Source: Hyalangium minutum (lineage in GTDB: Bacteria > Myxococcota > Myxococcia > Myxococcales > Myxococcaceae). From it: a stretch of DNA of 64,000 nucleotides. The DNA lies in NCBI RefSeq assembly GCF_000737315.1, contig NZ_JMCB01000003.1, positions 310,001 through 374,000 of the forward strand, written 5' to 3'. The notes beneath the pieces are model-generated. The model was not told where the DNA came from. It did not search any database and saw only the letters and a program-made list of their open reading frames with translations. Of the stretch, positions 4,495 through 58,666 are shown in pieces. The translations under genes were made by a program, and so were the position numbers. Numbering within the stretch: position 1 is the first letter of the stretch; every line of letters begins with the position of its first letter.

Positions 4495-4600
4495 GCTCCG
4501 GGTGTAGCCGATTCCACGCCAAATGGGGCGTCAGGGTGCACGGCTCGCACCGTTCACTCCCCTCTGTCCGCGAGCCCCCTCTTGGCGGTAAGCACGTCTC

Positions 4601-11252: not shown

Positions 11253-11270
11253 CGTGCTCCTCAGAGGGGC

Positions 11271-28045: not shown

Positions 28046-28048
28046 AGC

Positions 28049-28918
28049 CTACTCCTGAGGCGAGTCCGGGCTGACGGCCTGCACGGCCGAGGCGGGAACC
28101 TTCAACAGGTTCGCCACGAACGGGACGACGCCCGGAAAGCCATCGAGTTCAAACCGATCCGACCAGATCTTCCCCGTCGTGCCGGCCAGGAGACCGCGGA
28201 AGGTGCGGCCCATCACCCGGCCCGCGGCGAAGCGGTACTTCTCGCCGTTCACGACCAGCTCCACCAGCACCTCCAGGGGGCTGCGCGGGGGAACCTGCGA
28301 GTGAGGACCGAAGGCCTGGGCGACCTCCTCATAGAGGACCCGGGCGCCCGGGCCCACGGCCGAGGCGGGGGGCCGGGCCAAACGCTCCTCGATGAGCGCG
28401 CTCAGGTAGTCCGCCAGGGCGGCCCGGTCCCGGAACTCGAACAGCTCGAAGCGGAACGGCGGCAGGCCGCTCAGCTCCTTGCCGTCGCGGCGCACCCGGG
28501 CCACATGGAACTGGCCATGCCTGTCCGCCACCAGCGTGAGCGAGAGGGGCCCGGCCTCCAGCTCGGTGGACAGCACCAGTGACTCTGGATCCAGATCCGG
28601 GTGCAGCCCCATGGAGTGCAGCTGCGCGGAGCGGCGCTCGATGTGGAAGAGGTAGTCATCGAAGGCGCCGCTGAGCACCAGGGCCACATCCTCCTGGGAT
28701 GCCGCGGCGCTGAGGAGGACGGGAGTCATCCCCACCACCGCCGGAGGGGCCGCGGGGATCAGCCGATCCCGCTCGATGTGGAACGAGATGGTGGTGAGCG
28801 GCTGCCGGGTGACCGGGTTGATGGGGGCCGAGCTCTCGTCCAGCTCCAAGATGGCGATGGGGCCTTGGGCGCCCTGCTCGACGCGCAGGCCGAGCTGCTC
28901 AATCCGGGTGGTGTCCAT
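28049..28918 (-). CDS. Hypothetical protein in the liuA-meaB-rnc unit
   Basis: 289 aa ORF with host-like codon usage, 3-bp spacing to both neighbours. Confidence 0.7.
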   Translation of the reverse strand: MDTTRIEQLGLRVEQGAQGPIAILELDESSAPINPVTRQPLTTISFHIERDRLIPAAPPAVVGMTPVLLSAAASQEDVALVLSGAFDDYLFHIERRSAQLHSMGLHPDLDPESLVLSTELEAGPLSLTLVADRHGQFHVARVRRDGKELSGLPPFRFELFEFRDRAALADYLSALIEERLARPPASAVGPGARVLYEEVAQAFGPHSQVPPRSPLEVLVELVVNGEKYRFAAGRVMGRTFRGLLAGTTGKIWSDRFELDGFPGVVPFVANLLKVPASAVQAVSPDSPQE

Positions 28919-28921
28919 GCG

Positions 28922-30064
28922 TCAGCCCTTGAAGATTTCGCGGGCGATGACGCTGCGCTGGATCTCGCTGGTGCCCTCGCCGATCTCGCACAGCTTGGCG
29001 TCGCGCAGGTAGCGCTCCACCGGGAACTCGCGCGTGTAGCCGTAGCCGCCGTGGATCTGCACCGCCTTGTTGCAGGCGCGCATGGCGGCCTCCGAGGCGA
29101 ACAGCTTGGCCTGCGAGGCGGCCTGCGTGTACGTCTGGCCCGCGTCCGCCATCCACGCCGCGCGATGGACGAGCAGGCGTGCCGCGTCGATCTCCGTCTT
29201 CATGTCCGAGAACATCCAGCGCAGGCCCTGGAACTCGGCGATGGGCTGGCCGAAGGCGGTGCGCTCGCGGGCGTAGCGCACGGACTCTTCAATGGCACCT
29301 CGGCCCAGGCCCACCGCCAACGCGCCGATGGTGATGCGGCCCTTGTCGAGGATCTTCAGCGTGTCGATGAAGCCGTGGTCCACCTCGCCCAGCCGCTGCG
29401 AGTCCGGCACCTCCACGCCCTCGAGCACCAGCTCCGCCGTGTCCGAGGAGCGCATGCCCAGCTTTCCGTGGATGGAGCGCTGGCTGAAGCCCGGCGTGCC
29501 CTTCTCCAAGATGAAGGCGGTGATGCCCTTCTGGCGCTTCTCCGGGGCGGTGAGCGCGAGGATCACGAACACGTGGCCCACGGTGCCCTGGGTGATGAAC
29601 ATCTTGGCGCCGTTGAGGATCCACTTGTCGCCCTTGCGGACGGCGGTGGTCTTCAGGCCCGAGGCGTCCGAGCCGGAGGCGGGCTCGGTCAGGCCCCAGG
29701 CGCCCAGCCACTCGCCCGAGGCGAGCTTGGGCAGGTACTTCTTCTTCTGGGCGTCGTTGCCGAACACGCGGATGTGGCTGGTGCCCAGGCCGTTGTGCGA
29801 GGCCACCGTGAGGGCCAGCGAGCCGTCGTAGCGGGCGATCTCCTCCACGGCCACCGCCACCGCCAGGCTGTCCATGGCCGCTCCGCCGTACTCCTCGGAG
29901 ACCAGCATGCCCAGCACGCCCATCTCGCCCAGCTCCCGGACGACCTCCGCCGGGAACCTCTCGTCTTTGTCCCACTCCCGAGACTGGGTTTTGACCTTGC
30001 GCTCGCAGAAGTCCTTCAGCGAGTTCTTCAGGGCGCGGTGACTCTCTGGAAGTTCGAAGTCCAT
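28922..30064 (-). CDS. liuA: Acyl-CoA dehydrogenase (isovaleryl-CoA dehydrogenase LiuA-like)
   Basis: LTEPASGSDA, NGAKMFIT, KLGMRSSDT, QIHGGYGY, IGEGTSEIQ; adjacent to carboxyltransferase and LiuC. Confidence 0.85.
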   Translation of the reverse strand: MDFELPESHRALKNSLKDFCERKVKTQSREWDKDERFPAEVVRELGEMGVLGMLVSEEYGGAAMDSLAVAVAVEEIARYDGSLALTVASHNGLGTSHIRVFGNDAQKKKYLPKLASGEWLGAWGLTEPASGSDASGLKTTAVRKGDKWILNGAKMFITQGTVGHVFVILALTAPEKRQKGITAFILEKGTPGFSQRSIHGKLGMRSSDTAELVLEGVEVPDSQRLGEVDHGFIDTLKILDKGRITIGALAVGLGRGAIEESVRYARERTAFGQPIAEFQGLRWMFSDMKTEIDAARLLVHRAAWMADAGQTYTQAASQAKLFASEAAMRACNKAVQIHGGYGYTREFPVERYLRDAKLCEIGEGTSEIQRSVIAREIFKG

Positions 30065-30144
30065 GGTGTTCGAAATATCTAATCCCGAGGAGGGGGCAGT
30101 GGGTAGCGGAAGAGTCCGAGGATGGATACTGGAGCGGCTCGGCC

Positions 30145-31674
30145 TTACACGGGCAGTACGCCGTGCTTCTTCTCCGGGCGAGGCTGGTAGCGGCGCGAGT
30201 AGGTCTCGAAGCGCTGGGTCAGCTCATGACGCAGCCGGTCACCGGGGACGATCTCGTCCACCACCAGCTCGCTGGCCAGCTTGTAGATGTCCACGTCCGC
30301 CCGGTACTCGTCCCGGAGCTGCTGGACGTAGGCGGCACGCTCGGCCTCGGGCTTCTCCTGGATCTTGTTGAAGTACACGGCGTTCACGGCGGCCTCGGGG
30401 CCCATGACGGCGATCATCGCCTGGGGCAGCGCCAGGGTGGCATCCGGGGCGAAGCCGGGGCCGGACATGGCATAGAGCCCCGCGCCGTAGGCCTTGCGCA
30501 CCACCACGCAGATGCGCGGCACGCTGGCCTCGGACACGGCGGAGATCATCTTCGCGCCGGCGCGGATGATGCCCGCGCGCTCCACCTTGGTGCCGATCAT
30601 GAAGCCCGGCACGTCCGCCAGGTAGAGCAGCGGGATGTTGAAGGCATCACACAGCCAGATGAACCGGGCAGCCTTGTCCGCCGAGTCCACGAAGAGCACT
30701 CCCCCCTTGTACTTGGGCTGGTTGGCGACGATGCCCACCGGGCGGCCGTTGATGCGGCCCAGGCCGGTGACGATCTCCTGGGCGAAGAGCTTCTTCACCT
30801 CGAACCAGCTGCCCTCGTCGATCAGCTCGTTGATGAGGGCGTACATGTCGAACGGCTTGTTCTGATCCGCGGGGATGAGCTCGTCCACGCGCTTGCCGCT
30901 GGCCTTGGGGGCCTTGGGCGCGGCGGCGGGCGGCGGCTGGCTGAAGTTCTCCGGGAAGAAGCTGAGGTAGTGCTTGGCCGCCTCGATGGCCTCGGGCTCC
31001 GTCTTCACCAGCACGTCGCCGCAGCCGGAGATCGAGCAGTGCATCTTCGCGCCGCCCATCTCCTCGAGCGTCACCTTCTCGCCGATCACCATCTCCGCCA
31101 TGCGCGGGCTGCCCAGGTACATGGAGGCGTTGCCGTCCACCATGATGACCAAATCACAGAACGCGGGGATGTAGGCGCCGCCGGCCGCCGAGGGCCCGAA
31201 CAGCAGGCAGATCTGCGGCACGAAGCCGGACAGGTGCACCTCGTTGTAGAAGATGCGGCCCGCGCCGCGGCGGCCGGGGAACATCTCCACCTGATCGGTG
31301 ATGCGGGCGCCCGCCGAGTCCACCAGGTACAGCAGCGGACAGCGCAGCGTGCGGGCCGTCTCCTGGATGCGGAGGATCTTCTCCACGGTGCGAGCGCCCC
31401 AGCTTCCCGCCTTCACGGTGGAGTCGTTGGCCATGATGGCGACAGTGCGGCCGGCCACCTTGCCCAAGCCGATGACGACGCCGTCCGAGGGCAGCTCGGA
31501 ATCGGCGTTGTTGGCGAGCTTGGCGTCCTCGATGAAGGAGTCCGCGTCCACCAGCAGGCGGATGCGCTCGCGCGCGAAGAGCTTGCCCGCCTCTTTGTTC
31601 TTCGCGTGGTACTTCTCGGCGCCGCCCTTCTCTACGTCGGCGATCTTCTGGAGAAGCTTCTGGTCGTAGGACAT
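30145..31674 (-). CDS. liuB: Acyl-CoA carboxylase carboxyltransferase subunit (methylcrotonyl-CoA carboxylase beta, LiuB-like)
   Basis: DSAGARI, GPSAAGGAY, MGGAKMH, DVPGFMIG, RKAYGAG. Confidence 0.85.
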   Translation of the reverse strand: MSYDQKLLQKIADVEKGGAEKYHAKNKEAGKLFARERIRLLVDADSFIEDAKLANNADSELPSDGVVIGLGKVAGRTVAIMANDSTVKAGSWGARTVEKILRIQETARTLRCPLLYLVDSAGARITDQVEMFPGRRGAGRIFYNEVHLSGFVPQICLLFGPSAAGGAYIPAFCDLVIMVDGNASMYLGSPRMAEMVIGEKVTLEEMGGAKMHCSISGCGDVLVKTEPEAIEAAKHYLSFFPENFSQPPPAAAPKAPKASGKRVDELIPADQNKPFDMYALINELIDEGSWFEVKKLFAQEIVTGLGRINGRPVGIVANQPKYKGGVLFVDSADKAARFIWLCDAFNIPLLYLADVPGFMIGTKVERAGIIRAGAKMISAVSEASVPRICVVVRKAYGAGLYAMSGPGFAPDATLALPQAMIAVMGPEAAVNAVYFNKIQEKPEAERAAYVQQLRDEYRADVDIYKLASELVVDEIVPGDRLRHELTQRFETYSRRYQPRPEKKHGVLPV

Positions 31675-31750
31675 GGCGGGGGGCCACATACCAGAAAAGA
31701 CGCTCGGCTGGCTGCTCTCAGGAAGTGTTGAGTGGAGCAACCCGTCGGCC

Positions 31751-31780
31751 GTTGGACCGACCGACCGACCGGTGGGCAAC
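31751..31780. promoter_or_regulatory. (GACC)4 tandem/near-palindromic element in liuB/ytxH divergent region; candidate TetR-type operator
   Basis: gttggaccgaccgaccgaccggtgggcaac. Confidence 0.35.
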
Positions 31781-45315: not shown

Positions 45316-47199
45316 TTAGAACGCGCCGCCCTCGCGGTAGGCGCCCCAGACCTTGCGGAACACGTCGCAGATCTCGCCGAGCGTGGCGTAGGCCTTCACC
45401 GCCTCGAGCACCGGCGGCACCATGTTGTCCGTGCCGCGCGCCGCCGCCTCCACCTTGGCCAGCGCCGCCTGTACCGCCTCGTTGTTGCGCTCAGCCTTCA
45501 CCTGGGCCAGCCGCGCCTTCTGCTCCTCGGCCACCTTGTCGTCGATGTGGAGCAGCTCGATGGGCGCGTCCTTGTCCGCCTTGAACGCGTTCAGGCCGAC
45601 GATCAGCCGATCGCCCTGTTCCACCTCGCGCTGGAAGCGGTAGGCGCTCTCGCCGATCTCCTTCTGCGGGTACTGCTCCTCCACCGCGCGGATGATGCCG
45701 CCCATCTCGTCGATGCGGCGGATGTACTCCATCGCCCGCTTCTCCGTCTCGTCGGTGAGGTACTCCACGTAGTAGCTGCCCGCGAGCGGATCCACCACGC
45801 GGTCCACGCCGGACTCGTGAGCGATCAGCTGCTGGGTGCGCAGCGCGATCGTCACCGACTCCTCGGTGGGCAGCGCGTACGTCTCGTCCAGCGAGTTGGT
45901 GTGCAGCGACTGGGTGCCGCCCAGCACCGCTGCCATGGCCTGCAGCGCCGTGCGCACCACGTTGTTGTAGGGCTGCTGCGCCGTCAGCGACACGCCGGCC
46001 GTCTGCGCGTGCGTCTTCAGCTGCCACGAGCGCGGGTTCTTCGCGCCGAAGCGGTAGCGCATGACGTTGGCCCAGATGCGGCGCGCGGCGCGGAACTTGG
46101 CGATCTCCTCGAAGAAGTCGTTGTGCACGTCCCAGAAGAAGCTCAGCTGGGGCGCGAAGGAGTCCACGTCCATCCCGCGCTTCACGCACTCCTCCACGTA
46201 GCCGATGCCGTCGGCCAGCGTGAAGGCCAGCTCCTGGACGGCCGTCGCTCCGGCCTCGCGGATGTGGTAGCCGCTGATGGAGACCGGGTACCACTTGGGC
46301 ATGTGCTTCGTGCAGAACTCGATCATGTCCGTGACGATGCGCACGGCCGGCCGAGGCGCGACGATCCACTCCTTCTGCGCGATGTACTCCTTGAGCATGT
46401 CGTTCTGGATGGTGCCCGCGAGCTTGGCCATCGGAACGCCCTGCTTCTCACCCACCGCGATGTACATGCAGAGCGCCACCACCGCGCTCGCGTTGATGGT
46501 CATCGAGGTGGTGACCTTGTCCAGCTGGATCCCGTCGAAGAGGATCTCGAAGTCACGCAGCGAGGAGATGGCCACGCCCTCCTTGCCCACCTCGCCGCGG
46601 CTCATGGAGTGGTCCGCGTCGTAGCCCATGAGCGCCGGCATATCGAAGGCCGTGGACAGGCCTGTCATGCCGTGGCTGATGAGGTACTTGAAGCGCTTGT
46701 TGGTGTCCGCCGGCGTGCCGAAGCCCGCGAACTGGCGCATCGTCCAGAGCCGGCCCCGGTACATGGTGGGCTGAGGGCCGCGGGTGAACGGGAACTGGCC
46801 GGGCAGCCCGATGCGGTCGGCCTGCTCGTCCTTGCGATCGGCCAGCGTCAGCACGTCCGGAATGGGGATGCCCGAGTCCGTGGTGAACTGCTTGCGCCGC
46901 AGCGGCATCTTCGCCGTCACCTGGGCGAGCTCATCCTTGGCCCACTTCTCCGCCTGCTTCGCGGCAGCCTTCACCGAAGCGGCGTCATAGTGCTTCAGCG
47001 CGGCGGCCTTCTTCTTTGGGGCGGCCTTCTTCACCAGAGCCTTGCCCGCCTTGCCGGCCTTCTTGGCCACCTGGGCGACCTTCTTGGCGGCCTTGGCCAG
47101 CTTGGAGGGCTTGCCCCCCTTCTTGCTGACGGAGGCCTTCTTCGGGGACTGGGAGGCAGCGGAGCGAGCGACGGTCTTCGGAGCGGTTCGCGCAGGCAT
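45316..47199 (-). CDS. Adenosylcobalamin-dependent acyl-CoA mutase large subunit, isobutyryl-CoA mutase (IcmA)-type
   Basis: [57 protein letters not shown]; no B12-binding domain. Confidence 0.9.
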
Positions 47200-47255
47200 G
47201 GCGCGGGGATGTAGCACCCGCATCCAGGGGTCGCAAGCCGGGCGGAGCGAGCGTG

Positions 47256-48449
47256 TCAGCGTGCCTTCGTGAGCCCATCACGCAGGCGCCGAGCGCCCTC
47301 GTCCAGCACCCCGTCCGTCTTGCAGAAGGCGAAGCGAGCGAAGCGCTGGCCCAGGTGCCTGTGATCCGGCGAGTAGAAGACACTGGGAGGAATGGCCGCC
47401 ACGCCCACCTGCGTCACCAGGTGCCGACAGAAGGCCACGTCATCCGGGAAGCCCAGGTGGGAAATCTCCGCCAGGATGAAGTAGCTGCCCTCGGGGGCGT
47501 GCGCGGGCAGGCCTGCCTCTCGGAGGCCTCGCAGCAGCTTTTCGCGCCGCGCCAGGTAGTTCGCCGTCAGCTCCTGGAAGTAACTGTCCGGCAGACGCAG
47601 CGCGGCAGCGGTGGCCGTTTGGAGGGGGGACGCAGTGGCGAAGGTGACGAACTGGTGCGCGCGCTGCACCGCGTCACGCAGCGGCGGGGGCGCGATGACC
47701 CAGCCGATCTTCCAGCCGGTGAGGCTGAACGTCTTCCCCATGCTGCTCACGGTGACAGTTCGATCCGCCAGTGAAGGCACCGTGGCGGGGCGCACATGCT
47801 GGGCGGGCGCGAAGACGATGTGCTCGTACACCTCATCCGAGAGCACCTTCACATCGTGCTTCACGCACAGGGCGCCGATGCGCTCGAGTTCCTCACGGGT
47901 GAACACCTTGCCCGTGGGGTTCTGCGGGCTGTTGAGGATGAGCAGCCGCGTGCGCGGGCTGAAGGCGGCCTCCAGCTCGGCCCAGTCGATCCACCACTGG
48001 GCGTGTTGAGCATCCGGTGCGCGCAGCGGCACGTAGCGCGCCTTGGCTCCAATAAAGGTGATGTTCGCGTCGTACGAGTCATAGAAAGGCTCGAACGCGA
48101 TGACTTCGTCGCCCGGATCCACCAGGCCAAGAATGACGTCCAGGATGGCCTCGGTGGCGCCGCTGGTGACGGTGACCATCGTGTCCGGATCCACCTGCTG
48201 GCCGTAGAAGCGCGCGGCGTGCTCGGAGATGGCCTGGCGCAGATCCTTGGAGCCCGTGGTGATGGCGTACTGGTTGACGCCGTCGCGGATGGCGCGCTGA
48301 GCGGCCTCTTTCACTGCGTCGGGCCCGTCGAAGTCCGGGAAGCCCTGCCCGAGGTTCACCGCGCCGTGCTTCAGGGCGAGCGCACTGAACTCGGAGAAGA
48401 CCGTGGTGCCAAAGCGGGAGACGCGTTCCGCGGCGGAGGGCCGGCTCAT
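47256..48449 (-). CDS. PLP-dependent class I aminotransferase (YbdL/methionine-glutamine transaminase-like)
   Basis: [40 protein letters not shown]. Confidence 0.92.
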
Positions 48450-48492: not shown

Positions 48493-49446
48493 CTAGCGGC
48501 GCACGATAGCGCCCATGGGCAGGGAACGCTCGGACGAGTAGCTCCGGCTGCCTTTCGCTGGGGACAGGGCTCGGGCGGCCGCCGCGACCAGCAGCACCAC
48601 GGGCAGCACCGCCACCAGGTCCACGGCGTAGTGGAAGCGCCCGGCCACCGTCGCCACGATGAGGCCGATTCCGGGCAGGAGCATCGTCCAGAAGACCCGC
48701 CGCGAGAACCGGAGCGCGTAGAAGAGGACCAGCAGCGTCACCCCGGTGTGGCCCGACGGGAAGCAGTCCCGGATGAACACGGGGGTGCGCATCAGCGAGT
48801 CCAGTACCGACGTCACGACCACCCCCTGGAGCGGTCCCGGGAAGGCGCTCGCGAGGAAGAGGCGCGGCCCGATGGCAGGCACGGCGATGTAGGCCGCGTA
48901 GCCCACGGTGAAGAAGAGGCCCATCGCCAGCAGGAACTCATCGAACGCCGCGGCCTTTCGATGGAGGTACAGCGTGACGCCCAGCACCATGGCCCAGGCG
49001 AAGTGGCCGTAGTAGCAGACCATCAGCACGTCCTGGAGCCACGGCGGCACCGCGCTCGAGAGCACCACCGAGACCTGAACGCCGAACAACCGCTCTTCCA
49101 GGGTGGCGAGCTGCGCATCCCGAAGCACGGGGTTGATCGCATCCACGAGCGGGTTGAGCAGCTCATGGCCCAGCCCCGCCACCGGGAGCAGCCAGAAGTC
49201 CGCCACCCAGCGCAGCGGCCGGACCCGAGGCCACCAGGACTGCAGCATGCGGAGCACCACCAGCCCCAGCGCGAACGCGGCGAAGCCCCCGGCGGAGCGC
49301 AGCGCTCCCGGTGCCCAGCGGCACGGACCCACGAGCGCCAGTGCGGCGACCGAGCAGGCGGCAATCAGAACGCAGTCGACCGGCTTGAAGCGCACCTTCC
49401 TACGGCGAGCAAGCAACCTCGCGCTCTGGTGGGACCAGGGGCTCAT
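48493..49446 (-). CDS. PAP2-superfamily membrane enzyme, AUR1/inositol-phosphorylceramide-synthase-like
   Basis: Multiple TM helices; PAIGPR, CFPSGHT, RFHYAVDL motifs; ATGA-coupled to MMPL gene. Confidence 0.75.
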   Translation of the reverse strand: MSPWSHQSARLLARRRKVRFKPVDCVLIAACSVAALALVGPCRWAPGALRSAGGFAAFALGLVVLRMLQSWWPRVRPLRWVADFWLLPVAGLGHELLNPLVDAINPVLRDAQLATLEERLFGVQVSVVLSSAVPPWLQDVLMVCYYGHFAWAMVLGVTLYLHRKAAAFDEFLLAMGLFFTVGYAAYIAVPAIGPRLFLASAFPGPLQGVVVTSVLDSLMRTPVFIRDCFPSGHTGVTLLVLFYALRFSRRVFWTMLLPGIGLIVATVAGRFHYAVDLVAVLPVVLLVAAAARALSPAKGSRSYSSERSLPMGAIVRR

Positions 49447-51938
49447 GCGGACTTCCGCTCTTCAGACGGAGCGGCTGGCTGGTCGCCCTCCGTGCGGATG
49501 TTCAGGCTCTGGACCACCGCAGCCTCCCCTGCCCTCTCCCCATGCCGGAACTTCCAGCGCTCCAGCAGCGCCAGCAGCGCCGGAAAGAACACCGTTGTTC
49601 CCAGGAAGGTGCACACGACTCCGAGGAGCGCAATCTGTCCGATGGAGCGCAATCCCTGGTGGCTGGCCACCAGCAAAGCGCCGTAGCCCGCGGCGTTGGA
49701 CAGCGTGGCCGCCACGGCGGCGAACCCCGTGTGCCGGACCACATGGCCCAGCGAGCCCGGGCCCTCTTCCTCATAGCGGTGGAAAAGATGCACGGAGTTG
49801 TCCACCGCGATCGCCAGCAGGTTGGGCAGCACCACCGCGTTGATGAAGTTGAGCTGCACGTCGAACAGGTACATGCCCCCGGCCAGGCACACCATGCCGA
49901 GGAACAGCGGCCCCGCGACGAGCATCGCCTTCTTCAGGCTGCGCAGGCTGGCGAAGATGGCCAGGAACACCACCAGCGCCGCCGCCCCCAGGATGAACGG
50001 CCCGTCCCCGCGCACCATCGCGAAGATGCGCGAGGCGATGCGGTTGCTGTCCAGCACCGACAGATCGATCCCCCGCACGTGCGCTTCATAGACCACCTCG
50101 TCGAGCTGTGACGCCCAGCGCTGGAGATCCCGCGTGTCGTAGTTGGACACCGAGGGGAACAGCAGCAGGAACATCCCCTTGCCATCCAGCGCCTCGAAGC
50201 GGCGGCGGGCCTCCACCGGCAGTTGCTCGATGCCGTACGGGGTGGCCCCCAACATGGCCTGGAAGTCCTTCACGCGAGGGTCTTCCCGGACGGACTCGGG
50301 CATCTGGGACACCAGCTCTCGCAGGCGGGCGATCTCCGCCTGGCGGTGCTCCACATCCTCGGGGATCAGATCGGCCAGCGAGGCGGAGCGCAGGAACACC
50401 GAGTGCGTGCTGTGCCGGCTGTGCACCTCAGCGATCACCTGCCGCACCTTCCGGGCCTGCTCCAGATCGTCCACGAGCAAAATGGCCGGGTTGAGCGGGT
50501 TGCCGAGCTGCTCGGTGATGTGATCGTCCAGGCGCGAAGAGGGCGAGTCGCCCTTCAGCTTGCGCATGTCCGTCTCGAAGCCGAGCCGAGGTGCCACGAA
50601 CGCCGAGAAGCCCGCGAAGGCCACCACCACCAGCGCCAGGCCCGCCACCACGGACGTAGGCCAGCGCTTCCCCGCACGCACGGGAGCGCGCTCCCCCGCC
50701 GGGGCCTTGGCGGCCGCTGAGGGGGCACGGAAGGGACGGATCCGCTCGGCGATGGACAGCAGCGACGGCCCCAGCCCGTACGCGGCGAGCACCGCCAACA
50801 TCACTCCCATGCCCGCCAGCAGGCCAAACTGTTGGAAGGCGTGGAACTGCGCCAGGAGCAGCACCAGGAAGGCCGCCGCGTTGGTAAAGGCCGACGTGAG
50901 CGCGCCCGAGAACGTGCCTCGCACCGCCGCGCTGAGCGCCTCGCGCGAATCCAGGTGCTGCCGCTCCTCCCAGTAGCGCATGCCCAGGTGGACGCCGTAC
51001 TCGATGCCCAGTCCGATCAGGATGGCCACCAGGAAGCCCGTCACCACGTTCAGGTGCCCGATGACCAGCTGCGCGAAGGCGAACGTCAGCACCACGCTCA
51101 CCATCACCGGCACTCCCACCACCGCCAGCGCCGACACGCGCCGCGTGGCCAGCAGGATGATGCCTACCGCCAGCAGCGCGGACAGAATGCCCGCGTTGGC
51201 CAGGTCCCGCCGCATCACCGAGTCCTCTTCGATGCGGCTCTGGAAGTTGCCTGTGGCATCCACCGTCACGCCCGGGTAGCCCTGGGCCACCTCCGCCGCG
51301 ACGGCCTTGGCCTCGTCCACGAACTGGCGCGCAAAGCCCAGGTCCGCCGCCGTCCCGGCCGGCTTGAGGAAGAGGTACACCTCTCGGCCATCCGCCGACG
51401 CCAGCTCCTCCTGGATGGGCGACTCAGGCAGGTACTTGCGCTGGAGCTCCTCAAAGGTAGGCGGCGCCTCCTGATTCTCCAGCTCCACGTAGAACGGATT
51501 GAGCTGCCTCCGCTCATACGTCACCCGGGCCTCGAGCTCGTCGTGCAACGCTCGCAGGCGCTCGGCTGGCATGAGCAGCAGTCCGTTGCGCAGGAAGAAG
51601 CCCACGTCAAAGTGGTGCTCCACGTAGCGGACCTGGGGCAGCTTCTCCAGTCGCCCTTGCAGCTCCTTCGCGTAGGCCCGCAGCGTGTCTGGAGCAGCCC
51701 CCTGGGCCCGCAGCACCAGGTACCCGTCCCCACCTGCCTTCTGTGACACCCGCGTCAGATCCTGCACTTCGCGCGCGCCCTCGGGCAGCAGCTCCACGAA
51801 CGAGCCGCGGAACTCCAGCCGCGAGGCCAGCAGCGCCCCACCCAGTCCCAGCGCGGCGAAGAGCCCCACCATCCAGAGAGGACGCGCCACGGCTGTATGG
51901 AGGAACCGCTCAAACCACCGTTGACGCAAATTCGGCAC
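49443..51938 (-). CDS. MMPL/RND-family lipid transporter (HpnN-like architecture)
   Basis: Two repeats of TM + large periplasmic domain + TM bundle; LIGLGIEYGVH and LAIAVDNSVH RND motifs; GTG start inferred. Confidence 0.88.
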   Translation of the reverse strand: MPNLRQRWFERFLHTAVARPLWMVGLFAALGLGGALLASRLEFRGSFVELLPEGAREVQDLTRVSQKAGGDGYLVLRAQGAAPDTLRAYAKELQGRLEKLPQVRYVEHHFDVGFFLRNGLLLMPAERLRALHDELEARVTYERRQLNPFYVELENQEAPPTFEELQRKYLPESPIQEELASADGREVYLFLKPAGTAADLGFARQFVDEAKAVAAEVAQGYPGVTVDATGNFQSRIEEDSVMRRDLANAGILSALLAVGIILLATRRVSALAVVGVPVMVSVVLTFAFAQLVIGHLNVVTGFLVAILIGLGIEYGVHLGMRYWEERQHLDSREALSAAVRGTFSGALTSAFTNAAAFLVLLLAQFHAFQQFGLLAGMGVMLAVLAAYGLGPSLLSIAERIRPFRAPSAAAKAPAGERAPVRAGKRWPTSVVAGLALVVVAFAGFSAFVAPRLGFETDMRKLKGDSPSSRLDDHITEQLGNPLNPAILLVDDLEQARKVRQVIAEVHSRHSTHSVFLRSASLADLIPEDVEHRQAEIARLRELVSQMPESVREDPRVKDFQAMLGATPYGIEQLPVEARRRFEALDGKGMFLLLFPSVSNYDTRDLQRWASQLDEVVYEAHVRGIDLSVLDSNRIASRIFAMVRGDGPFILGAAALVVFLAIFASLRSLKKAMLVAGPLFLGMVCLAGGMYLFDVQLNFINAVVLPNLLAIAVDNSVHLFHRYEEEGPGSLGHVVRHTGFAAVAATLSNAAGYGALLVASHQGLRSIGQIALLGVVCTFLGTTVFFPALLALLERWKFRHGERAGEAAVVQSLNIRTEGDQPAAPSEERKSA

Positions 51939-52081
51939 CCGGCACCACCTTGTCCGCCGGACAAGAGCAAAATTCCGGCCGATCCATTTACAGGGCTTCA
52001 GCAACACCGCCCAAGGCGGAGGACTTCCAGGGGGTTGTAAATTACCCTGACATCGCTGCCATAGCGCCGGAAGTCTGCACC

Positions 52082-52110
52082 TTGACAGTGCTGGTTTCCC
52101 TCTTTATTCA
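52082..52110 (+). promoter_or_regulatory. Putative sigma70-type promoter of spt operon
   Basis: TTGACA, 17-nt spacer, TATTCA. Confidence 0.4.
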
Positions 52111-52155
52111 CGGCCCCGCGTCGCCCCGAAGGAGGTCGCACGCTGCATCAGAGTG

Positions 52156-52179
52156 TGTCAGGCCGGTACACATCTGACA
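52156..52179. promoter_or_regulatory. Inverted repeat TGTCAG-N12-CTGACA upstream of spt; candidate operator
   Basis: Perfect 6-bp arms; a further CTGACAT occurs at 52047-52053. Confidence 0.3.
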
Positions 52180-52233
52180 TCTGCGTGCGCCGAGCCCGCT
52201 CCAGGATCCCCCGACGCAGACAGAAAGACCATC

Positions 52234-53793
52234 ATGAGCGACGTCTTCGACAAGTGCAGTAACTGGAAGGATTACCGCATCGCGAAGGCCACCGGCCTTT
52301 ACCCGTACTTCCGTTCCATCGAAGCGTCCCACGGCGCCACGGAGGTCGAGATCGAAGGCCGCCGCGTCATCATGGTGGGCTCCAACAATTACCTGGGTCT
52401 GTCGGCCGATCCGCGCGTGAAGGAGGCGGCGATCAAGGCGGTAGAGAAGTTCGGCACCACGTGCTCGGGCTCGCGCCTGCTCAACGGCACGCTGGCGCTG
52501 CATGAGGAACTGGAGGCGAAGCTGGCCAAGTTCCTCAACCGCGAGTCGGCCCTGGTCATTTCCACGGGTTTCCAGACGAACCTGGCGCTGTCCTCCATCC
52601 TGGGCCGCCATGACATTGTCTTCACCGATCGGCAGAACCACGCCTCGCTGGTGGACGGCATTCGCCTGGGCTTCGCCACCGAGCGCAAGTTCCGCCACAA
52701 CGACATGGAGCACCTGGAGCAGCTGCTGTCGGCGGCGGATCCGGACGCGGGGAAGATCATCGTCACCGACGGCGTGTTCTCCATGGAGGGCGACATCTGC
52801 AACCTGCCCCGGATCGCCGAGCTGGCGAAGCAGTACAACGCCCGGGTGATGACGGATGACGCGCACTCCATGGGCGTGCTGGGCGAGACGGGCCGCGGCG
52901 TGCCGGAGTACTTCGGCCTGGAGGCGGAGACGGACCTGACGATGGGCACGTTCTCCAAGAGCTTCGCATCGCTGGGCGGCGTGCTGGCGGGGCCCTTCGA
53001 GGTCATCAACTACATGCGCCACAAGGCGCGCTCGGTGATCTTCTCGGCGTCCATGACGCCGGCTTCCATTGCGGCGGTGCTCAAGTCGCTGGAGATCATC
53101 GAGGCGGAGCCGCAGCGGCGCGCGCGCCTGCTGGACATCGCGGAGAAGATGCACAACGGCTTCCGCGCCATGGGCTTCGACACGGGCGTGTCGGTGACGC
53201 CGGTGGTGCCGGTGCACATCGGCGATCAGGTGAAGTGCTTCCGCTTCTGGAAGGCGCTGCACGAGGCGGGCGTGTTCGCCAACCCCGTCATCCCCCCGGC
53301 CGTCGAGGCGGGCCACGCGCTCATCCGCACCAGCTTCATGGCCACGCACACGGATGCGCAGCTGGATCGCGTGCTGGACACCTTCGAGAAGATCGGCCGG
53401 CGCATGGAAGTGATTCCCGAGACGCGGCCCACGGTGTACGAGCCGGTGAAGATCGCTCGGCCGGGCACGGGCGTGCGCTCTAACAAGGCCTCCGAGAAGT
53501 GGGCGGCGGGCTCTGTTGGCCAGCTGGCGGACAAGGGCGGGCTGACGCTCGAGCAGCTGTCGCGCATGTCCTCGCGCGAGGTGGCTGGGAAGATCTTCGA
53601 CGCGGTGGAGCACCTCACCTGGCGCGCGGCGAACCTGCAGCCGGCGGACCTGCGCAAGCTGGGCGGTGCCTCCAAGCGCCTGTGGGAGAAGCGCGGCGAG
53701 CTGCCCGGCCTGCTGCTGGAGAAGGGCGCTCACTTCTTCATGCGCAACGGCCAGGACGGCACCACCACCACCACCCAGGCGGAAAGGAACTAG
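52234..53793 (+). CDS. spt: Serine palmitoyltransferase (alpha-oxoamine synthase family) with C-terminal extension
   Basis: GSNNYLGL, GSRLLNGT, NHASLVDG, DGVFSMEGD, DDAHSMG, GTFSKSFASLGG (SPT-type Lys motif); followed by GNAT and SDR genes. Confidence 0.85.
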   Translation: MSDVFDKCSNWKDYRIAKATGLYPYFRSIEASHGATEVEIEGRRVIMVGSNNYLGLSADPRVKEAAIKAVEKFGTTCSGSRLLNGTLALHEELEAKLAKFLNRESALVISTGFQTNLALSSILGRHDIVFTDRQNHASLVDGIRLGFATERKFRHNDMEHLEQLLSAADPDAGKIIVTDGVFSMEGDICNLPRIAELAKQYNARVMTDDAHSMGVLGETGRGVPEYFGLEAETDLTMGTFSKSFASLGGVLAGPFEVINYMRHKARSVIFSASMTPASIAAVLKSLEIIEAEPQRRARLLDIAEKMHNGFRAMGFDTGVSVTPVVPVHIGDQVKCFRFWKALHEAGVFANPVIPPAVEAGHALIRTSFMATHTDAQLDRVLDTFEKIGRRMEVIPETRPTVYEPVKIARPGTGVRSNKASEKWAAGSVGQLADKGGLTLEQLSRMSSREVAGKIFDAVEHLTWRAANLQPADLRKLGGASKRLWEKRGELPGLLLEKGAHFFMRNGQDGTTTTTQAERN

Positions 53794-53799
53794 GCGCCC

Positions 53800-54978
53800 A
53801 TGGCCCTCCCCGCCGAGTCGTCCAGCGCCACCACCCTGCCCCCAGTTCCCTCGGATGTGACGGTGAAGCCCGTGCGGACCAGCGCGGACAAGACCGCGTT
53901 CATCCGCATGGTCTATCCGATCTACCAGGGGGACCCGAACTGGGTGCCGCCCTTGGAGATGGAGCGAAACGACTTCCTCGACCGGAAGAAGAACCCGTTC
54001 TTCGAGTTCGGTGAGGTGGAGCTGTTCCTGGCGCTCCGGGGTGGCCAGGTGGTGGGCCGCATCGCCGCGGTGAGGGATCCCCACTACAACGAGTTCCACG
54101 GCACCAACGAGGGCTTCTTCGGCCTGTTCGAGTGCATCAACGACGCGGGCGTGGCTCGGGCCCTGTTCGACGCGGCGTCTCAGTGGCTGCGCGCTCAGGG
54201 CTTCGTGAAGATCCTCGGGCCGATGAACTTCTCCACCAACCACGAGGTGGGGCTCCTGGTGGACGGGTTCGATCGGACGCCGGCGATCATGACGACGTAC
54301 AACCCGCCGTACTACGGCGCGCTGATCGAGGCGAACGGCTTCACGAAGGCCAAGGATCTGTGGTCCTTCGAGCTGTCGTCCTCGGTCCAGCCGCCGGAGA
54401 AGGTGGCGCGCATCGCGGAGAAGATCCGCCAGCGCGAGGGCGTCACCGTCCGCTCGGTGGACCTGAAGAACTTCGAGGCCGAGGTGCGCCTCATCAAGAC
54501 CATCTACAACGCGGCCTGGGAGAAGAACTGGGGCTTCGTCCCGATGACGGACCGCGAGTTCGATCACCTGGCGCGGGACATGAAGCAGATCGTCCGGTCG
54601 GAGCTGCTGCTGATCGCCGAGGTGAAGGGCGAGCCAGTGGCCTTCTCCATGACGATCCCGGACGCCAACGAGGCCCTGAAGGAGGCCAAGGGGCGGCTGA
54701 CCACGTTCGGCCTGCCCATCGGGCTGGTGAAGATGCTGCTGGCGGCGCGGAAGATCCGTCGGCTGCGGCTCATCACGCTCGGCATCAAGGAGGGCTACCG
54801 GCGCCGGGGCCTGGACGCCATCCTGTACCTGGACACCCTGCGCACTGCGCACCAACTAGGCTACGAGGGCGGGGAGATCTCCTGGACGCTCGAGGACAAC
54901 CACCTGGTGAACCGGGCGATCGAGTCCATGGGCGGCAAGCGCTCGAAGACCCACCGCGTCTACGAGCGCGCGCTCTAA
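53800..54978 (+). CDS. GNAT-family bacterial ceramide synthase (bCerS/YghO-like)
   Basis: DPNWVPPL, NPFFE, VVGRIAA, GFFGLFECIND, GPMNFSTNHEVGLLVDGF, YNPPYY, SWTLEDN; 6 bp after spt. Confidence 0.85.
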   Translation: MALPAESSSATTLPPVPSDVTVKPVRTSADKTAFIRMVYPIYQGDPNWVPPLEMERNDFLDRKKNPFFEFGEVELFLALRGGQVVGRIAAVRDPHYNEFHGTNEGFFGLFECINDAGVARALFDAASQWLRAQGFVKILGPMNFSTNHEVGLLVDGFDRTPAIMTTYNPPYYGALIEANGFTKAKDLWSFELSSSVQPPEKVARIAEKIRQREGVTVRSVDLKNFEAEVRLIKTIYNAAWEKNWGFVPMTDREFDHLARDMKQIVRSELLLIAEVKGEPVAFSMTIPDANEALKEAKGRLTTFGLPIGLVKMLLAARKIRRLRLITLGIKEGYRRRGLDAILYLDTLRTAHQLGYEGGEISWTLEDNHLVNRAIESMGGKRSKTHRVYERAL

Positions 54979-54995
54979 GCAGCAGCGGAGACAAC

Positions 54996-55997
54996 GTGAA
55001 GATCCTCCTGACGGGAAGCACCGGGTTCATCGGCCAGCGGCTGGCCAAGCGCATCGTCGAGCGGGGTGACACCCTGACGGCGCTCGTGCGGCGCACCTCG
55101 AAGCGGGGGGCGCTGGAGTCGCTCGGTGTGCGCTTCGCGATGGGCGATCTGCTCACGGGCGAGGGGCTCACCGAGGCCGTGAAGGATGTGGACTGTGTGC
55201 TGCACCTGGCCGGTGTCACCAAGTCCCGGGACGAGGCGGGCTACTTCCAGGGCAACGCCGAGGGCACCCGGCGGCTGGTGAAGGCCATGGCGGAGCTCCC
55301 TACCCCGCCTCGGCTCGTGTACTGCTCGTCGCTGGCGGCGGCGGGGCCCTCGGTGCCGGGACGTCCCCGGCGCGAGGAGGAGACGCCAGCGCCTGTCTCC
55401 CTCTACGGCCGGAGCAAGCTGGGCGGAGAGCAGGCGGTGCGGGAGTTTGCGGACCGCGTGCCCTCGGTGATCGTGCGGCCGCCGATCGTGTACGGGCCGG
55501 GAGATCAGGAGTTCCTGCCATCCATGCTGCCGATGGCGCGGCTGGGCGTGATGCTCAAGAGCGGCTTTGGCCCCAAGCTCTACTCGCTCATCCACGTGGA
55601 TGACCTGTGCACCGCGCTGCTGGCGGCGACCGAGCGGGGCCAGACGATGCGCGCGGGTGACGCGACGGCGGGCGTGTACATGGTGTCGGATGGCACGGAG
55701 CACCGGTGGGAGGACTTCTGCCAGGCGCTCGCGCAGGCCATGGGCCGTGCGAAGCCCACGGTGGTGTCGGTGCCCGAGACGGTCAGCTATGTGGTGGGAC
55801 TGGGCTCGGAGCTGGCGGCGCGCGTGAGGGGCACCATTCCGATTCTCAACCGGGACAAGGTCCGGGAGATGGCCTGTCCCGCGTGGACCTGCTCGATGGA
55901 GCGGGCCGCGAAAGAGCTGGGCTTCACGCCCGCCATCCCGCTGGCCCAGGGACTCGTAAGTGCTTTGGGCTCCGAGGCTCGGGCTTCGGGGCGCTAA
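54996..55997 (+). CDS. NAD-dependent epimerase/dehydratase-family SDR, probable ceramide reductase (CerR)
   Basis: GSTGFIG, HLAGVT, CSSLAAAG, YGRSK (YxxxK), RPPIVYGP; GGAG RBS + GTG. Confidence 0.75.
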   Translation: MKILLTGSTGFIGQRLAKRIVERGDTLTALVRRTSKRGALESLGVRFAMGDLLTGEGLTEAVKDVDCVLHLAGVTKSRDEAGYFQGNAEGTRRLVKAMAELPTPPRLVYCSSLAAAGPSVPGRPRREEETPAPVSLYGRSKLGGEQAVREFADRVPSVIVRPPIVYGPGDQEFLPSMLPMARLGVMLKSGFGPKLYSLIHVDDLCTALLAATERGQTMRAGDATAGVYMVSDGTEHRWEDFCQALAQAMGRAKPTVVSVPETVSYVVGLGSELAARVRGTIPILNRDKVREMACPAWTCSMERAAKELGFTPAIPLAQGLVSALGSEARASGR

Positions 55998-56015
55998 CTG
56001 CGCCCCACCCATACC

Positions 56016-56076
56016 CAGGTCTGACTGGTCAGACCTGAGGGTTGGCAGTAACGCCCAAGTCTAACCAGTTAGACTT
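56016..56076. repeat. Two related palindromes in the cerR/mlaC convergent gap; second may act as terminator
   Basis: CAGGTCTGAC-TG-GTCAGACCTG (56016-56037) and AAGTCTAAC-CA-GTTAGACTT (56057-56076) followed by TT. Confidence 0.75.
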
Positions 56077-56086
56077 TTGGGCCGGC

Positions 56087-56728
56087 CTACTTCCCGGTCG
56101 GAGCCTTCGGATCGGCGGTGCCCGTCGCCGCAGCCGGGGGCACATCCGCAGCCTTGGTGGTGGCAGCGGACTTCTCCAGCTGAGCCCGCTTGGTCTTCAG
56201 CGTGGAGAGCAGGCCGTCGAAGCCCTTGTCGGCCAGCAGCTTGCGGAACTGGCCTGCGTACGTCTCCACGAGGGACACCTCATCGGTGACGACATCGTAG
56301 ATGCGCCAGGTCGCGCCCTTCCCCGCCCCCTTGTAGAGCTTGTAGTCGACGGGGATCTGGTCCTTCTTCACTGCAAGGGTCGTGTTGACGACAGCCTCGT
56401 CGCCCTTGATGGTCTCCTTGCCGTACTTCACGTCCGCGTTGGCTTGGCCGATGGCCTTCTGAGCGTACGAGGCGCGCAGCAGCCCCTTCATGGTCTCGGT
56501 GAAGTCCTTGCGCTGCTCGGGCTTGAGCGTGTCCCACGTCTTGCCGAGTGCCCGCTTCGCGAGTTCCTCGAAGTCGACGAACTTCTCCACGACAGAGGCG
56601 AGCTGATCCACCGTGGCCCCAGGCGCGCCGGCGGCCTTCTGGACGTCCGCGTTGCCGGCCTTGACGACCTCGAGCGGAGTGGTGGGAGCGGCAGCGAGCA
56701 GCGTTGCGGCGATCAAAGGTGCAAGCAT
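56087..56728 (-). CDS. MlaC/Ttg2D-family periplasmic lipid-binding protein
   Basis: Signal peptide; FVDFEELAKRALG, F...LL..SY, VDYKL, WRIYDVVTDEVSLVETYAGQF. Confidence 0.88.
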   Translation of the reverse strand: MLAPLIAATLLAAAPTTPLEVVKAGNADVQKAAGAPGATVDQLASVVEKFVDFEELAKRALGKTWDTLKPEQRKDFTETMKGLLRASYAQKAIGQANADVKYGKETIKGDEAVVNTTLAVKKDQIPVDYKLYKGAGKGATWRIYDVVTDEVSLVETYAGQFRKLLADKGFDGLLSTLKTKRAQLEKSAATTKAADVPPAAATGTADPKAPTGK

Positions 56729-56787
56729 CGTTTTTGAGTCTCCGGGATGATGGTCGGAAGTGACGACAGGAGGAGCCAGTCCGTTAT

Positions 56788-58419
56788 TCACTGTCCTGCA
56801 GGCGCCATGCCGGTCACCCGGTTGAGCGCCGCTATTCCCACACGGGCGTCATGCCAGCTCTTGCCCTTGTCGGCTGAGGCCTGAGCAAGCGCTGTGAAGG
56901 CGTCCACCAGCTCGCGGGTGTCTCCCGTGCCGAGATCGAAGGCGGCATAGGCGGCGGTGGCCCAGCGGCGGGCGTTCTTCTCCGCGTCCGTCATGGCGCG
57001 GGCCTTGGCCAGCGCCGCCGTCAGCGCGCCATGCGTCTGGGTCACCTCCAGGCGGATGGCGGACTGGAGCAGCCGCTGCTGGGCCTTCAGCTTGTCCAGC
57101 TCCGCGCGGGATTGGTCGAGCTGCGCGTTCTTCATCGGGATGTCGAAGGTGCCGCGCGCCGCGATGCCGATGCCTGCGGAGCGATCGTTATAAGGATCGT
57201 AGGCGAAGGGTGTGCGCTGCGGGGTGGCGTTGGAGGTGTACGCGAACTTCGCGAAGCCCACGATCCCCAGGTCCGGGTAGTACGCACGCTCGCGGATGAG
57301 GACCTCCTGCTCGCGCGCCGCGATGCCCGCCTGGATGGCCGTCAGCTCGGGCCGGCGCTGCTCGGCCAGCGCCAGGGCCTTCTCCAATGTGGGCGGCGAG
57401 AACTCGTCCTCCTCCAGCGGCAGATCCACGCTGACGACCTGCACGGGCTCTCCAGGCTTGGCACCCGACAACAAACGGATGGCCTCCAGTGCCAGGATCC
57501 GTCCTTGCTGGGCCTCGGCGCGGCGGGACTCCAGCACCTGCCGGAAGAAGTTCAGCTTGTACGTGTCGATCTTGGAGACCTGCTGGGACTCCTCGTCCAG
57601 CAGCTCCTGGATGCGCTTGCCGGCATCCTCCAGTCGCTTCGCTGTCTCCTCGAGCTGCACGATTCCCGCGTTCGCGAGCTGGTACCCATAGAACGCCTGA
57701 GCAGCCTGGAAACCCGCCTCGGCGCGGGCCCGCTCCCGCAGCGCCGCGCCGATGATGGGGCCCTGGTCTCCCGCCTTCTCCAGCGCCGTGAGCTTGCCGA
57801 ACGTGTAGATGGGCAGCAGTGCGTTGACCTCCGCGCGCACCGTGACGCCCAGCGTGCCGAAGTTCCAGTCGCCCTCCAGCGTGGCCTCCGTCGTGGGAGG
57901 ACCGCCGAGCCCGTCATTGCGCGCCTCGGGCACCGGGCCGCCAAAGCCCACCACCGTTTCGAACTTGGGGAACCACGCCCAGTGGGCTTGCCTCTGGAGC
58001 GCTTGCAGCCGGTGAAGCTCCGCCTCGGCCTCCTCGACGCGCGCATCCGAGCGGCGCGCACGCGCCACGAGCTCCTCGAGCGTGAGCGGCCCGCTCTTGG
58101 CGGCCCCCTCGGCCGTGCCTGGAGCCTGCTGCTCGGTGGAGCGCGTCGCGTCCTGGGCGGCCTGATCCTGGGCTTGGGGCGTGGCGCTCTGCGCGCCCTC
58201 TCCCACCGTGGGCTGTCCCGGGAGCGTCGCGGGAGCGCCTGTTATGGGGGATGCCGTGCCCTGCCCGGCTTGAGAGGGGGTCGAGGTGCCCTGCCCTCCC
58301 GAGATGGGAGCGGCGGGTGCTGTGCCGGGCACGCCCTGCGCCGCCGCGCTCCCTGCCGAGAGCGCCAGCCCGATTCCCACGAGTCGTCCGAGTCCTGTCC
58401 GTTTCACCGATGGCCTCAT
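56788..58419 (-). CDS. TolC-family outer membrane efflux protein
   Basis: Signal peptide, P/A/Q/T-rich linker, LTLEELVARA, PIYTFGK, LAEQRRPEL, AAFDLGTGDTRELVDA. Confidence 0.85.
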   Translation of the reverse strand: MRPSVKRTGLGRLVGIGLALSAGSAAAQGVPGTAPAAPISGGQGTSTPSQAGQGTASPITGAPATLPGQPTVGEGAQSATPQAQDQAAQDATRSTEQQAPGTAEGAAKSGPLTLEELVARARRSDARVEEAEAELHRLQALQRQAHWAWFPKFETVVGFGGPVPEARNDGLGGPPTTEATLEGDWNFGTLGVTVRAEVNALLPIYTFGKLTALEKAGDQGPIIGAALRERARAEAGFQAAQAFYGYQLANAGIVQLEETAKRLEDAGKRIQELLDEESQQVSKIDTYKLNFFRQVLESRRAEAQQGRILALEAIRLLSGAKPGEPVQVVSVDLPLEEDEFSPPTLEKALALAEQRRPELTAIQAGIAAREQEVLIRERAYYPDLGIVGFAKFAYTSNATPQRTPFAYDPYNDRSAGIGIAARGTFDIPMKNAQLDQSRAELDKLKAQQRLLQSAIRLEVTQTHGALTAALAKARAMTDAEKNARRWATAAYAAFDLGTGDTRELVDAFTALAQASADKGKSWHDARVGIAALNRVTGMAPAGQ

Positions 58420-58666
58420 TCGCGGCCCGCCCTGTCGGCCCAGACCGCGGCGGCGCAGCATCTCCCTTCAAGGGGGCTCCGTCACCGCTTCTTTAACGTT
58501 TGCTGGGGGTTGTCCCGGGACTGATGAACGTTGGGGGCCCCACTGCGTGCGGGTGCTGACATTTTTTCGCGGGAACTCCTTGCGCTCTGTGGAGCGGGAA
58601 GCACAATCCGCGCCGCCCTTCGACGCGCCCGGCCCCCCGGCCGTGGCCCCAAGACTCAGGAGCCTT

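Follow-up and report, generated by a model that had tools for sequence, protein, structure and literature searches.

A 64-kb stretch of Hyalangium minutum DNA (the window, with a high GC content of about 0.63-0.71) carries three consecutive genes, spt, bcerS and cerR (genes 1, 2 and 3), whose products resemble the soluble enzymes with which bacteria make ceramide: a serine palmitoyltransferase (SPT), an acyltransferase of the GNAT type, and an extended short-chain dehydrogenase/reductase (SDR). Regarding their layout, the genes lie on the forward strand between positions 52234 and 55997, with gaps of 6 nt between spt and bcerS and of 17 nt between bcerS and cerR; a first-pass annotation had described this arrangement, together with a GTFSKS motif, and the map of open reading frames (ORFs) and the raw sequence, including the junctions, agree with it to the base. 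The start of spt matches the N-termini of its homologues (MxDVFDKC), and purine-rich stretches similar to Shine-Dalgarno sequences are found 5' of the bcerS and cerR starts (GGAAAGGAA and GCGGAGA). The GC content at the third codon position is 0.90-0.95 in genes 1 and 2, backing both as true coding frames; the coding status of gene 3 is based on its Pfam and homology matches. The unit is delimited by a divergent gene upstream and a convergent one downstream, and none of the Spt, bCerS and CerR proteins has predicted transmembrane segments. The intergenic region before spt is presumed to hold the promoters of both divergent units, and a simple scan for sigma-70 promoters gave no match in it; at the other end, two stable hairpins between cerR and the convergent mlaC-like gene, missed by a simple terminator scan and found by folding, likely mark the end of the transcription units (Table 1).

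As for gene 1, its product is a fold-type I enzyme that matches the Pfam family Aminotran_1_2 (E 1.7e-54), and the GTFSKS motif at aa 238-243 (nt 52945-52962, forward strand) contains the Schiff-base lysine that binds pyridoxal phosphate (PLP), K242, and aligns with the GTFSKS of the Sphingobacterium multivorum SPT. The latter (PDB 8guh and 3a2b) is the top PDB match, covering aa 6-393 with E 4.7e-120 and 405 bits; lower scores were given by a bifunctional 8-amino-7-oxononanoate synthase (AONS)/KBL enzyme (305 bits), the Sphingomonas SPTs (268-279 bits), Kbl (251 bits), the cysteate acyltransferase CFAT (28eh, 222 bits) and BioF (196 bits). By these scores, gene 1 is nearest to the S. multivorum SPT, about 100 bits above any other class of alpha-oxoamine synthase (AOS), and it ranks nearer to characterised SPTs than to BioF, Kbl, ALAS, CqsA or CFAT. 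In NCBIfam, the first-ranking model is NF047600, the SPT of the Cytophaga-Flavobacterium-Bacteroides (CFB) type, which scores 513 bits, the next family reaching 390; the SPT-type identity proposed earlier for the GTFSKS gene is thus backed by top matches that are characterised SPTs and by the NCBIfam SPT model.

Genes 2 and 3 were assigned by comparison with Escherichia coli BL21(DE3), where yghO (ECD_02850) and ECD_02852 ("epi") are homologues of the Caulobacter genes CC_1154 (bCerS) and CC_1164 (CerR), respectively (PMC9386255). The product of gene 2 shares 34% identity with E. coli YghO (E 7e-78) in an alignment of 381 columns that covers its aa 20-392, and it matches Pfam Acetyltransf_1; its family is large, with 9181 cluster representatives at E < 1e-3, its closest public orthologues are from Hyalangium spp. 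(85-92% identity), and its nearest relatives outside the myxobacteria include Streptomyces and Planctomycetota. Gene 3 matches Pfam Epimerase (E 8e-35), it aligns along its full length with ECD_02852 (29% identity, E 2e-35), and it has the motifs TGSTGFIG (aa 6-13; TGxxGxxG) and YGRSK (aa 137-141; YxxxK). Gene 1 in turn is 37% identical, full length, to the BL21 Spt, so that each of the three Hyalangium genes has a counterpart in the E. coli cluster yghO-aasR-epi-acpR-spt (ECD_02850-02854; NC_012971 2989282-2994885).

The association of the three genes was examined in a scan for gene 2 homologues that used a 9-sequence alignment as query and one genome per species; it returned 80 loci (L numbers below) from Myxococcota, Actinomycetota, Acidobacteriota, Verrucomicrobiota, Planctomycetota, Ignavibacteriota, Bacteroidota and other phyla. 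A Spt-like gene is present in 56 of the 80 loci, and in 52 it lies within 2.5 kb of the gene 2 homologue; a CerR-like gene is found in 35 (32 within 2.5 kb), always alongside Spt. The order spt-bcerS-cerR is the same in Stigmatella aurantiaca and Myxococcus stipitatus, and gene adjacency is conserved in at least 12 phyla. In addition, natural Spt-bCerS fusions exist, P0174 (780 aa) and P0241 (777 aa), each consisting of an AOS domain and a gene-2-like domain. Because the adjacency recurs across phyla and such fusions exist, the functional link of the three genes goes far beyond chance. In the literature, spt, bcerS and cerR are described as "often found clustered", and as unclustered in Bacteroidota (PMC11334938). 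Full-length homology to members of a published cluster, synteny and fusions also uphold the first-pass labels of a bCerS-like GNAT protein and a CerR-like SDR.

As a separate observation, some Myxococcota have a second gene-2-like paralogue (L010, 12259-13392; L015, L016 and L019), located either directly after cerR or in a locus without spt within 10 kb, and one protein, P0146 (784 aa), is a tandem double bCerS-like protein.

Taken together, spt, bcerS and cerR very probably constitute one transcription unit for the soluble enzymes by which bacteria produce ceramide, and the flanking genes probably extend this pathway. This reading is built on homology, motifs, operon structure, synteny and fusions, from which we infer the substrates, the order of the steps, the acyl donor and the roles of the neighbours; the intact three-enzyme route in one operon that had been proposed at first accords with the homology of each gene, the cross-phylum synteny and the Spt-bCerS fusions. 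In the first step, Spt would join L-serine and a long-chain acyl thioester to give 3-ketosphinganine, with an acyl chain that, judging from the known lipid composition of myxobacteria, is probably iso-branched; bCerS would add the N-acyl chain, and CerR would reduce the 3-keto group. Whether acylation or reduction comes first in bacteria is disputed (PMC11087976 versus PMC9278070) and is not readable from the sequence. Then, an Aur1-like PAP2 protein encoded upstream would probably turn the ceramide into a phosphosphingolipid, and a pump of the resistance-nodulation-division (RND) type, a MlaC/HpnM-like protein and a TolC-like protein would probably bring it to the outer membrane.

Some points weigh against this assignment. 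The score of gene 1 with NF047600 is lower than the curated cut-off of 640 bits; the model was built for the CFB group and is lineage-specific, so that the shortfall reflects taxonomic distance and SPT function is not excluded by it. For gene 2, NCBIfam has no model, leaving it without a curated family, and the link of genes 2 and 3 to the Caulobacter bCerS and CerR runs via the E. coli BL21 homologues named in PMC9386255. Finally, in Caulobacter, CerR resides in the periplasm (PMC11087976). The product of gene 3, by contrast, shows no signal peptide, with a Rossmann motif that begins at aa 6; the E. coli CerR homologue likewise lacks a signal peptide, so this feature does not discriminate for gene 3. 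The position of gene 1 below the SPT cut-off also explains why public records give its orthologues names such as "aminotransferase class I/II-fold PLP-dependent enzyme" or "8-amino-7-oxononanoate synthase"; the mislabelling by automatic annotation that the first-pass annotation had predicted was indeed encountered, with "N-acetyltransferase" as a further name.

Regarding the acyl donor, no PP-binding or AMP-binding Pfam domain occurs in any major ORF of the window; phmmer searches with E. coli AcpP and AcpR against its six-frame ORFs of at least 50 aa gave nothing better than E = 1.2, and tblastn with E. coli AasR gave zero matches in it. As a positive control, the same AcpP query recovers the divergent AcpR of the E. 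coli locus at E = 9e-6. The claim that the locus lacks genes encoding any acyl carrier protein (ACP) or acyl-CoA synthetase holds across the window by all three approaches. SPTs fall into two subgroups: in the rhodobacterial one, acpR is always and aasR usually beside spt, whereas the Bacteroidetes/delta-proteobacterial one, for which Myxococcus, Stigmatella and Sorangium are named, has neither gene adjacent (PMC9386255). The features of the rhodobacterial five-gene ceramide system (acpR-spt plus aasR, epi and aca), namely an ACP gene directly upstream of spt and an AasR gene near it, are absent from the Hyalangium locus, and since this is the rule for the Bacteroidetes/delta-proteobacterial subgroup (PMC9386255), the missing ACP gene is the expected state and no special feature of the locus. 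Furthermore, distant acpR-aasR homologues form an operon elsewhere in the genomes of M. xanthus (MXAN_6637/6636), S. aurantiaca and S. cellulosum (PMC9386255), so that 64 kb of sequence are too little to show that the pathway uses acyl-CoA or a housekeeping ACP; the first-pass annotation was correct about the ACP-less locus, and its step from there to acyl-CoA or the general ACP as the donor goes further than this allows.

The same distant operon is the starting point for an alternative on the first step, in which Spt would receive its acyl chain from a dedicated carrier, an AcpR/AasR-like pair encoded elsewhere in the genome. A strong preference for acyl-AcpR is documented in rhodobacterial SPTs (PMC9386255), and an AasR-like ligase gene lies near the ceramide genes in three loci of the scan (L021, L028 and L041). 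Against it, the myxobacterial Spt is of the Bacteroidetes type according to the NCBIfam and PDB matches, the window has no carrier gene, and the myxobacterial acpR/aasR homologues are not known to be linked to sphingolipids. In vitro, the Sphingobacterium SPT uses palmitoyl-CoA, which also counts against a dedicated carrier, and this source of the acyl chain is considered unlikely, if worth keeping in mind.

Considerably less probable is that the same enzyme types build a backbone from a substrate other than serine, as in 1-deoxy (alanine), glycine or cysteate-derived sulfonolipids. The substrate choice of an AOS is not certain from its sequence, and both the position of gene 1 under the curated SPT cut-off and its 222-bit match to the cysteate-C-fatty acyltransferase 28eh could be read in this way; yet the SPT matches lie at least some 100 bits above those of every other AOS class, the neighbourhood has no cysteate synthase or similar gene, and myxobacteria are documented producers of ceramides (PMC9246714, PMC11334938 supplement). 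As for a chance adjacency of unrelated housekeeping genes (a BioF/Kbl-type synthase, a GNAT protein and a sugar epimerase), which the names in public annotation would match, it appears effectively refuted by the conservation in so many phyla, by the fusions, and by the homology of each gene to a member of the E. coli ceramide cluster and thereby to the Caulobacter set.

Among the known systems, the Caulobacter crescentus pathway (Olea-Ozuna 2021 and Stankeviciute 2022, cited in PMC11087976 and PMC9386255) comprises Spt (CC_1162), bCerS (CC_1154/CCNA_01212) and CerR (CC_1164/CCNA_01222). The likeness with Hyalangium is by family, with E. coli as the bridge: an AOS, a GNAT-type acyltransferase of about 380 aa and an extended SDR. 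Caulobacter differs in needing AcpR and AasR beside spt and in having bcerS several genes away; in Hyalangium, the genes are contiguous, a carrier or ligase gene is absent, and Spt, which falls in the Bacteroidetes-type subgroup, bears an extension of 125 aa. The E. coli BL21 cluster differs in that it has acpR and aasR, yghO is divergent, and the genes that follow are LptG/LptF paralogues (L006, 22921-25067), not an RND/MlaC/outer-membrane efflux protein (OEP) set, which fits the Caulobacter transport preprint. The resemblance to the S. multivorum SPT extends over the catalytic domain (aa 6-393) and to the lack of an adjacent acpR in its subgroup, and it stops where the Sphingobacterium enzyme ends, at about 398 aa, without any extension.

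This C-terminal extension of Spt, of about 125 aa, occurs in 16 of the 56 loci with Spt: 15 have Myxococcota in their titles, and the other is a metagenome-assembled genome (MAG) titled Pseudomonadota (L058, 490 aa). Accordingly, the Spt proteins in the scan measure about 394-428 aa outside Myxococcota and mostly 507-523 aa in Myxococcota and L058. Its conserved core reads IPxxRP...ARPG, followed by ExxTW(R/K)AxNxxPxD...LxxxPxxLWxxR. Searches with the extension gave no Pfam, PDB or Foldseek match, and among the matches listed the only stand-alone homologues were myxobacterial Spt fragments from short or frameshifted assemblies. AlphaFold2 (AF2) predictions had low confidence (pLDDT of 54 for the full-length Spt and of 60 for the extension alone), with low-confidence helices and nothing interpretable beyond "helical". 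The possibility of a fused ACP was considered and rejected: there is no PP-binding match, the AcpP/AcpR searches were negative with a working control, and the sole candidate serines, aa 445-446, are not kept in deep Myxococcota lineages. A role of the extension in docking to the membrane or to a partner is a guess.

Table 1. Position of the ceramide genes and of the adjacent features in the window.
Feature	Position	Strand	Description
Class I/II aminotransferase	47256-48449	-	Methionine/aspartate aminotransferase-like, not AOS; divergent upstream unit
PAP2_3/Aur1-like membrane phosphotransferase	48493..49446	-	317 aa, multi-span; Pfam PAP2_3 E 7e-12, PAP2_C
HpnN/BstA-like RND (MMPL) transporter	49443..52007	-	854 aa; Pfam MMPL and Sterol-sensing; about 12 hydrophobic segments
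Divergent intergenic region	52008..52233		226 bp; between the RND gene (-) and spt (+)
spt (gene 1)	52234 (ATG)-53793 (TAG)	+	519 aa; catalytic domain aa 1-393, nt 52234-53412
Spt C-terminal extension	53413..53790	+	About 125 aa (aa 394-519); Myxococcota-conserved
bcerS (gene 2)	53800 (ATG)-54978 (TAA)	+	GNAT-type homologue, 392 aa
cerR (gene 3)	54996 (GTG)-55997 (TAA)	+	Extended-SDR (epimerase-type) homologue, 333 aa
Two stable hairpins	56009..56082		Between the convergent cerR and mlaC-like genes; minimum free energy -39.5 kcal/mol, z = -3.67 versus shuffles
MlaC/HpnM-like periplasmic lipid-binding protein	56087..56791	-	Pfam MlaC E 3e-37
TolC-like outer-membrane efflux protein (OEP)	56788..58461	-	Pfam OEP E 9.5e-25

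As for the genes upstream of the operon, the product of the RND gene scores 248 bits with HpnN and 229 bits with BstA in NCBIfam, both under the cut-off. In the deep-branching Myxococcota loci L022 (5832-8196) and L024 (5940-8270), this gene immediately precedes spt and shares its strand, giving the order RND-spt-bcerS-cerR, and the pump is a candidate sphingolipid exporter.

In the PAP2 protein, S231, H233, H272 and D276 are invariant across phyla and belong to the motifs S-x-H (SGH) and H-x-x-x-D (HYAVD). A PDB search with the single sequence found no match; the family profile matches the yeast AUR1 structure 9vj3 (E 6e-4) at positions 102-291, about 190 in all, and the other PAP2 structures over the last 70 positions only. 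The likeness to the Aur1 family comprises the PAP2_3 membership, the two motifs and this profile alignment, and it is weak by its E value. Yeast Aur1 and BT_1522 of Bacteroides thetaiotaomicron are inositol phosphorylceramide synthases. BT_1522, a bacterial Aur1 homologue and the proven phosphoinositol-dihydroceramide synthase of Bacteroides (PMC9246714), was set beside it by family description, the comparison in sequence being with yeast AUR1. In the Acidobacteriota loci L059 (9334-9867), L064 (9144-9920) and L077, as well as in a Candidatus Eisenbacteria MAG (L053, 12619-13233), L084 (12297-13076) and L030 (5311-5991), the PAP2 gene forms a collinear series with the ceramide genes, and its product is a candidate ceramide head-group transferase. 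With regard to the head group, ceramide phosphoinositol is reported for M. xanthus in work cited in PMC9246714.

Among related myxobacterial loci with a PAP2 gene, most have the aminotransferase gene next to it, as does L058; the aminotransferase gene is upstream of spt in Stigmatella and in L009, both without a PAP2 gene.

On the other side of the operon, the MlaC-like protein has 86 bits with the NCBIfam model HpnM, under its cut-off, and its translation probably begins at a Met located at about 56728. The gene adjoins cerR in seven loci (L001, L002, L007, L008, L009, L011 and L013), and the OEP gene is syntenic with it in most related loci, being undetected in L013; in Stigmatella, the MlaC-like/OEP pair stands beside cerR although the RND and PAP2 genes are absent. 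A pairing of an RND protein having a sterol-sensing domain with a MlaC/HpnM-like protein beside lipid genes recalls HpnN/HpnM (hopanoids) and BstA (sterols); all the scores are far under the family cut-offs, and for sphingolipid transport the set is a candidate.

Regarding export in other bacteria, Caulobacter uses LptF/G/C paralogues for its sphingolipids; myxobacteria have a single lptFG copy, and the MmpL gene beside the M. xanthus spt has already been proposed as an alternative export route (preprint 10.64898/2026.04.12.717747). No Lpt paralogue was found, be it among the flanking genes of the Hyalangium operon or among the remaining major ORFs in the window. In the literature searched, no mention of the MlaC-like/OEP pair or of the Aur1-like gene was found for myxobacteria.

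A broader proposal, tentative and on balance doubtful, is that the region of about 11 kb from about 47.3 to 58.5 kb is a self-contained module specific to Myxococcota, combining ceramide synthesis, Aur1-like head-group transfer, and RND/MlaC/TolC export; in it, the Spt tail would serve to anchor the enzyme, either at the membrane or at this machinery, or to dock an unlinked acyl carrier. If true, the module would represent a route differing from that of the Caulobacter LptFGC paralogues.

Elsewhere in the window, genes of acyl-CoA metabolism are found at 3424-4530, 27005-31779 and 45316-47223, encoding an enoyl-CoA hydratase, a MeaB GTPase, an acyl-CoA dehydrogenase, a carboxyltransferase and a methylmalonyl-CoA-mutase-like protein; a connection with the branched-chain starter units of iso-fatty acids is possible. 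A protein of 1168 aa (7764-11270, reverse strand) has a Ser/Thr kinase domain and a long WD40 beta-propeller array.

In conclusion, the ceramide operon itself is just one more orthologue in a pathway described before, and ceramides were known from this group; the practical value of the operon is in annotation, given that public records label these genes as AONS, aminotransferase and N-acetyltransferase. The surroundings and the Spt tail are more worth following than the operon. The route of sphingolipids to the outer membrane in Gram-negative bacteria still counted as "a mystery" in 2026 (preprint 10.64898/2026.04.12.717747), and the myxobacterial RND/MlaC-like/OEP set beside the ceramide genes is a possible way of export that differs from the Lpt paralogues found in Caulobacter and E. 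coli BL21; the transport idea is already voiced in the same preprint. Finally, the recurring Aur1-like fourth gene, seen in Acidobacteriota and other phyla, is a testable candidate for a phosphosphingolipid synthase outside Bacteroides.

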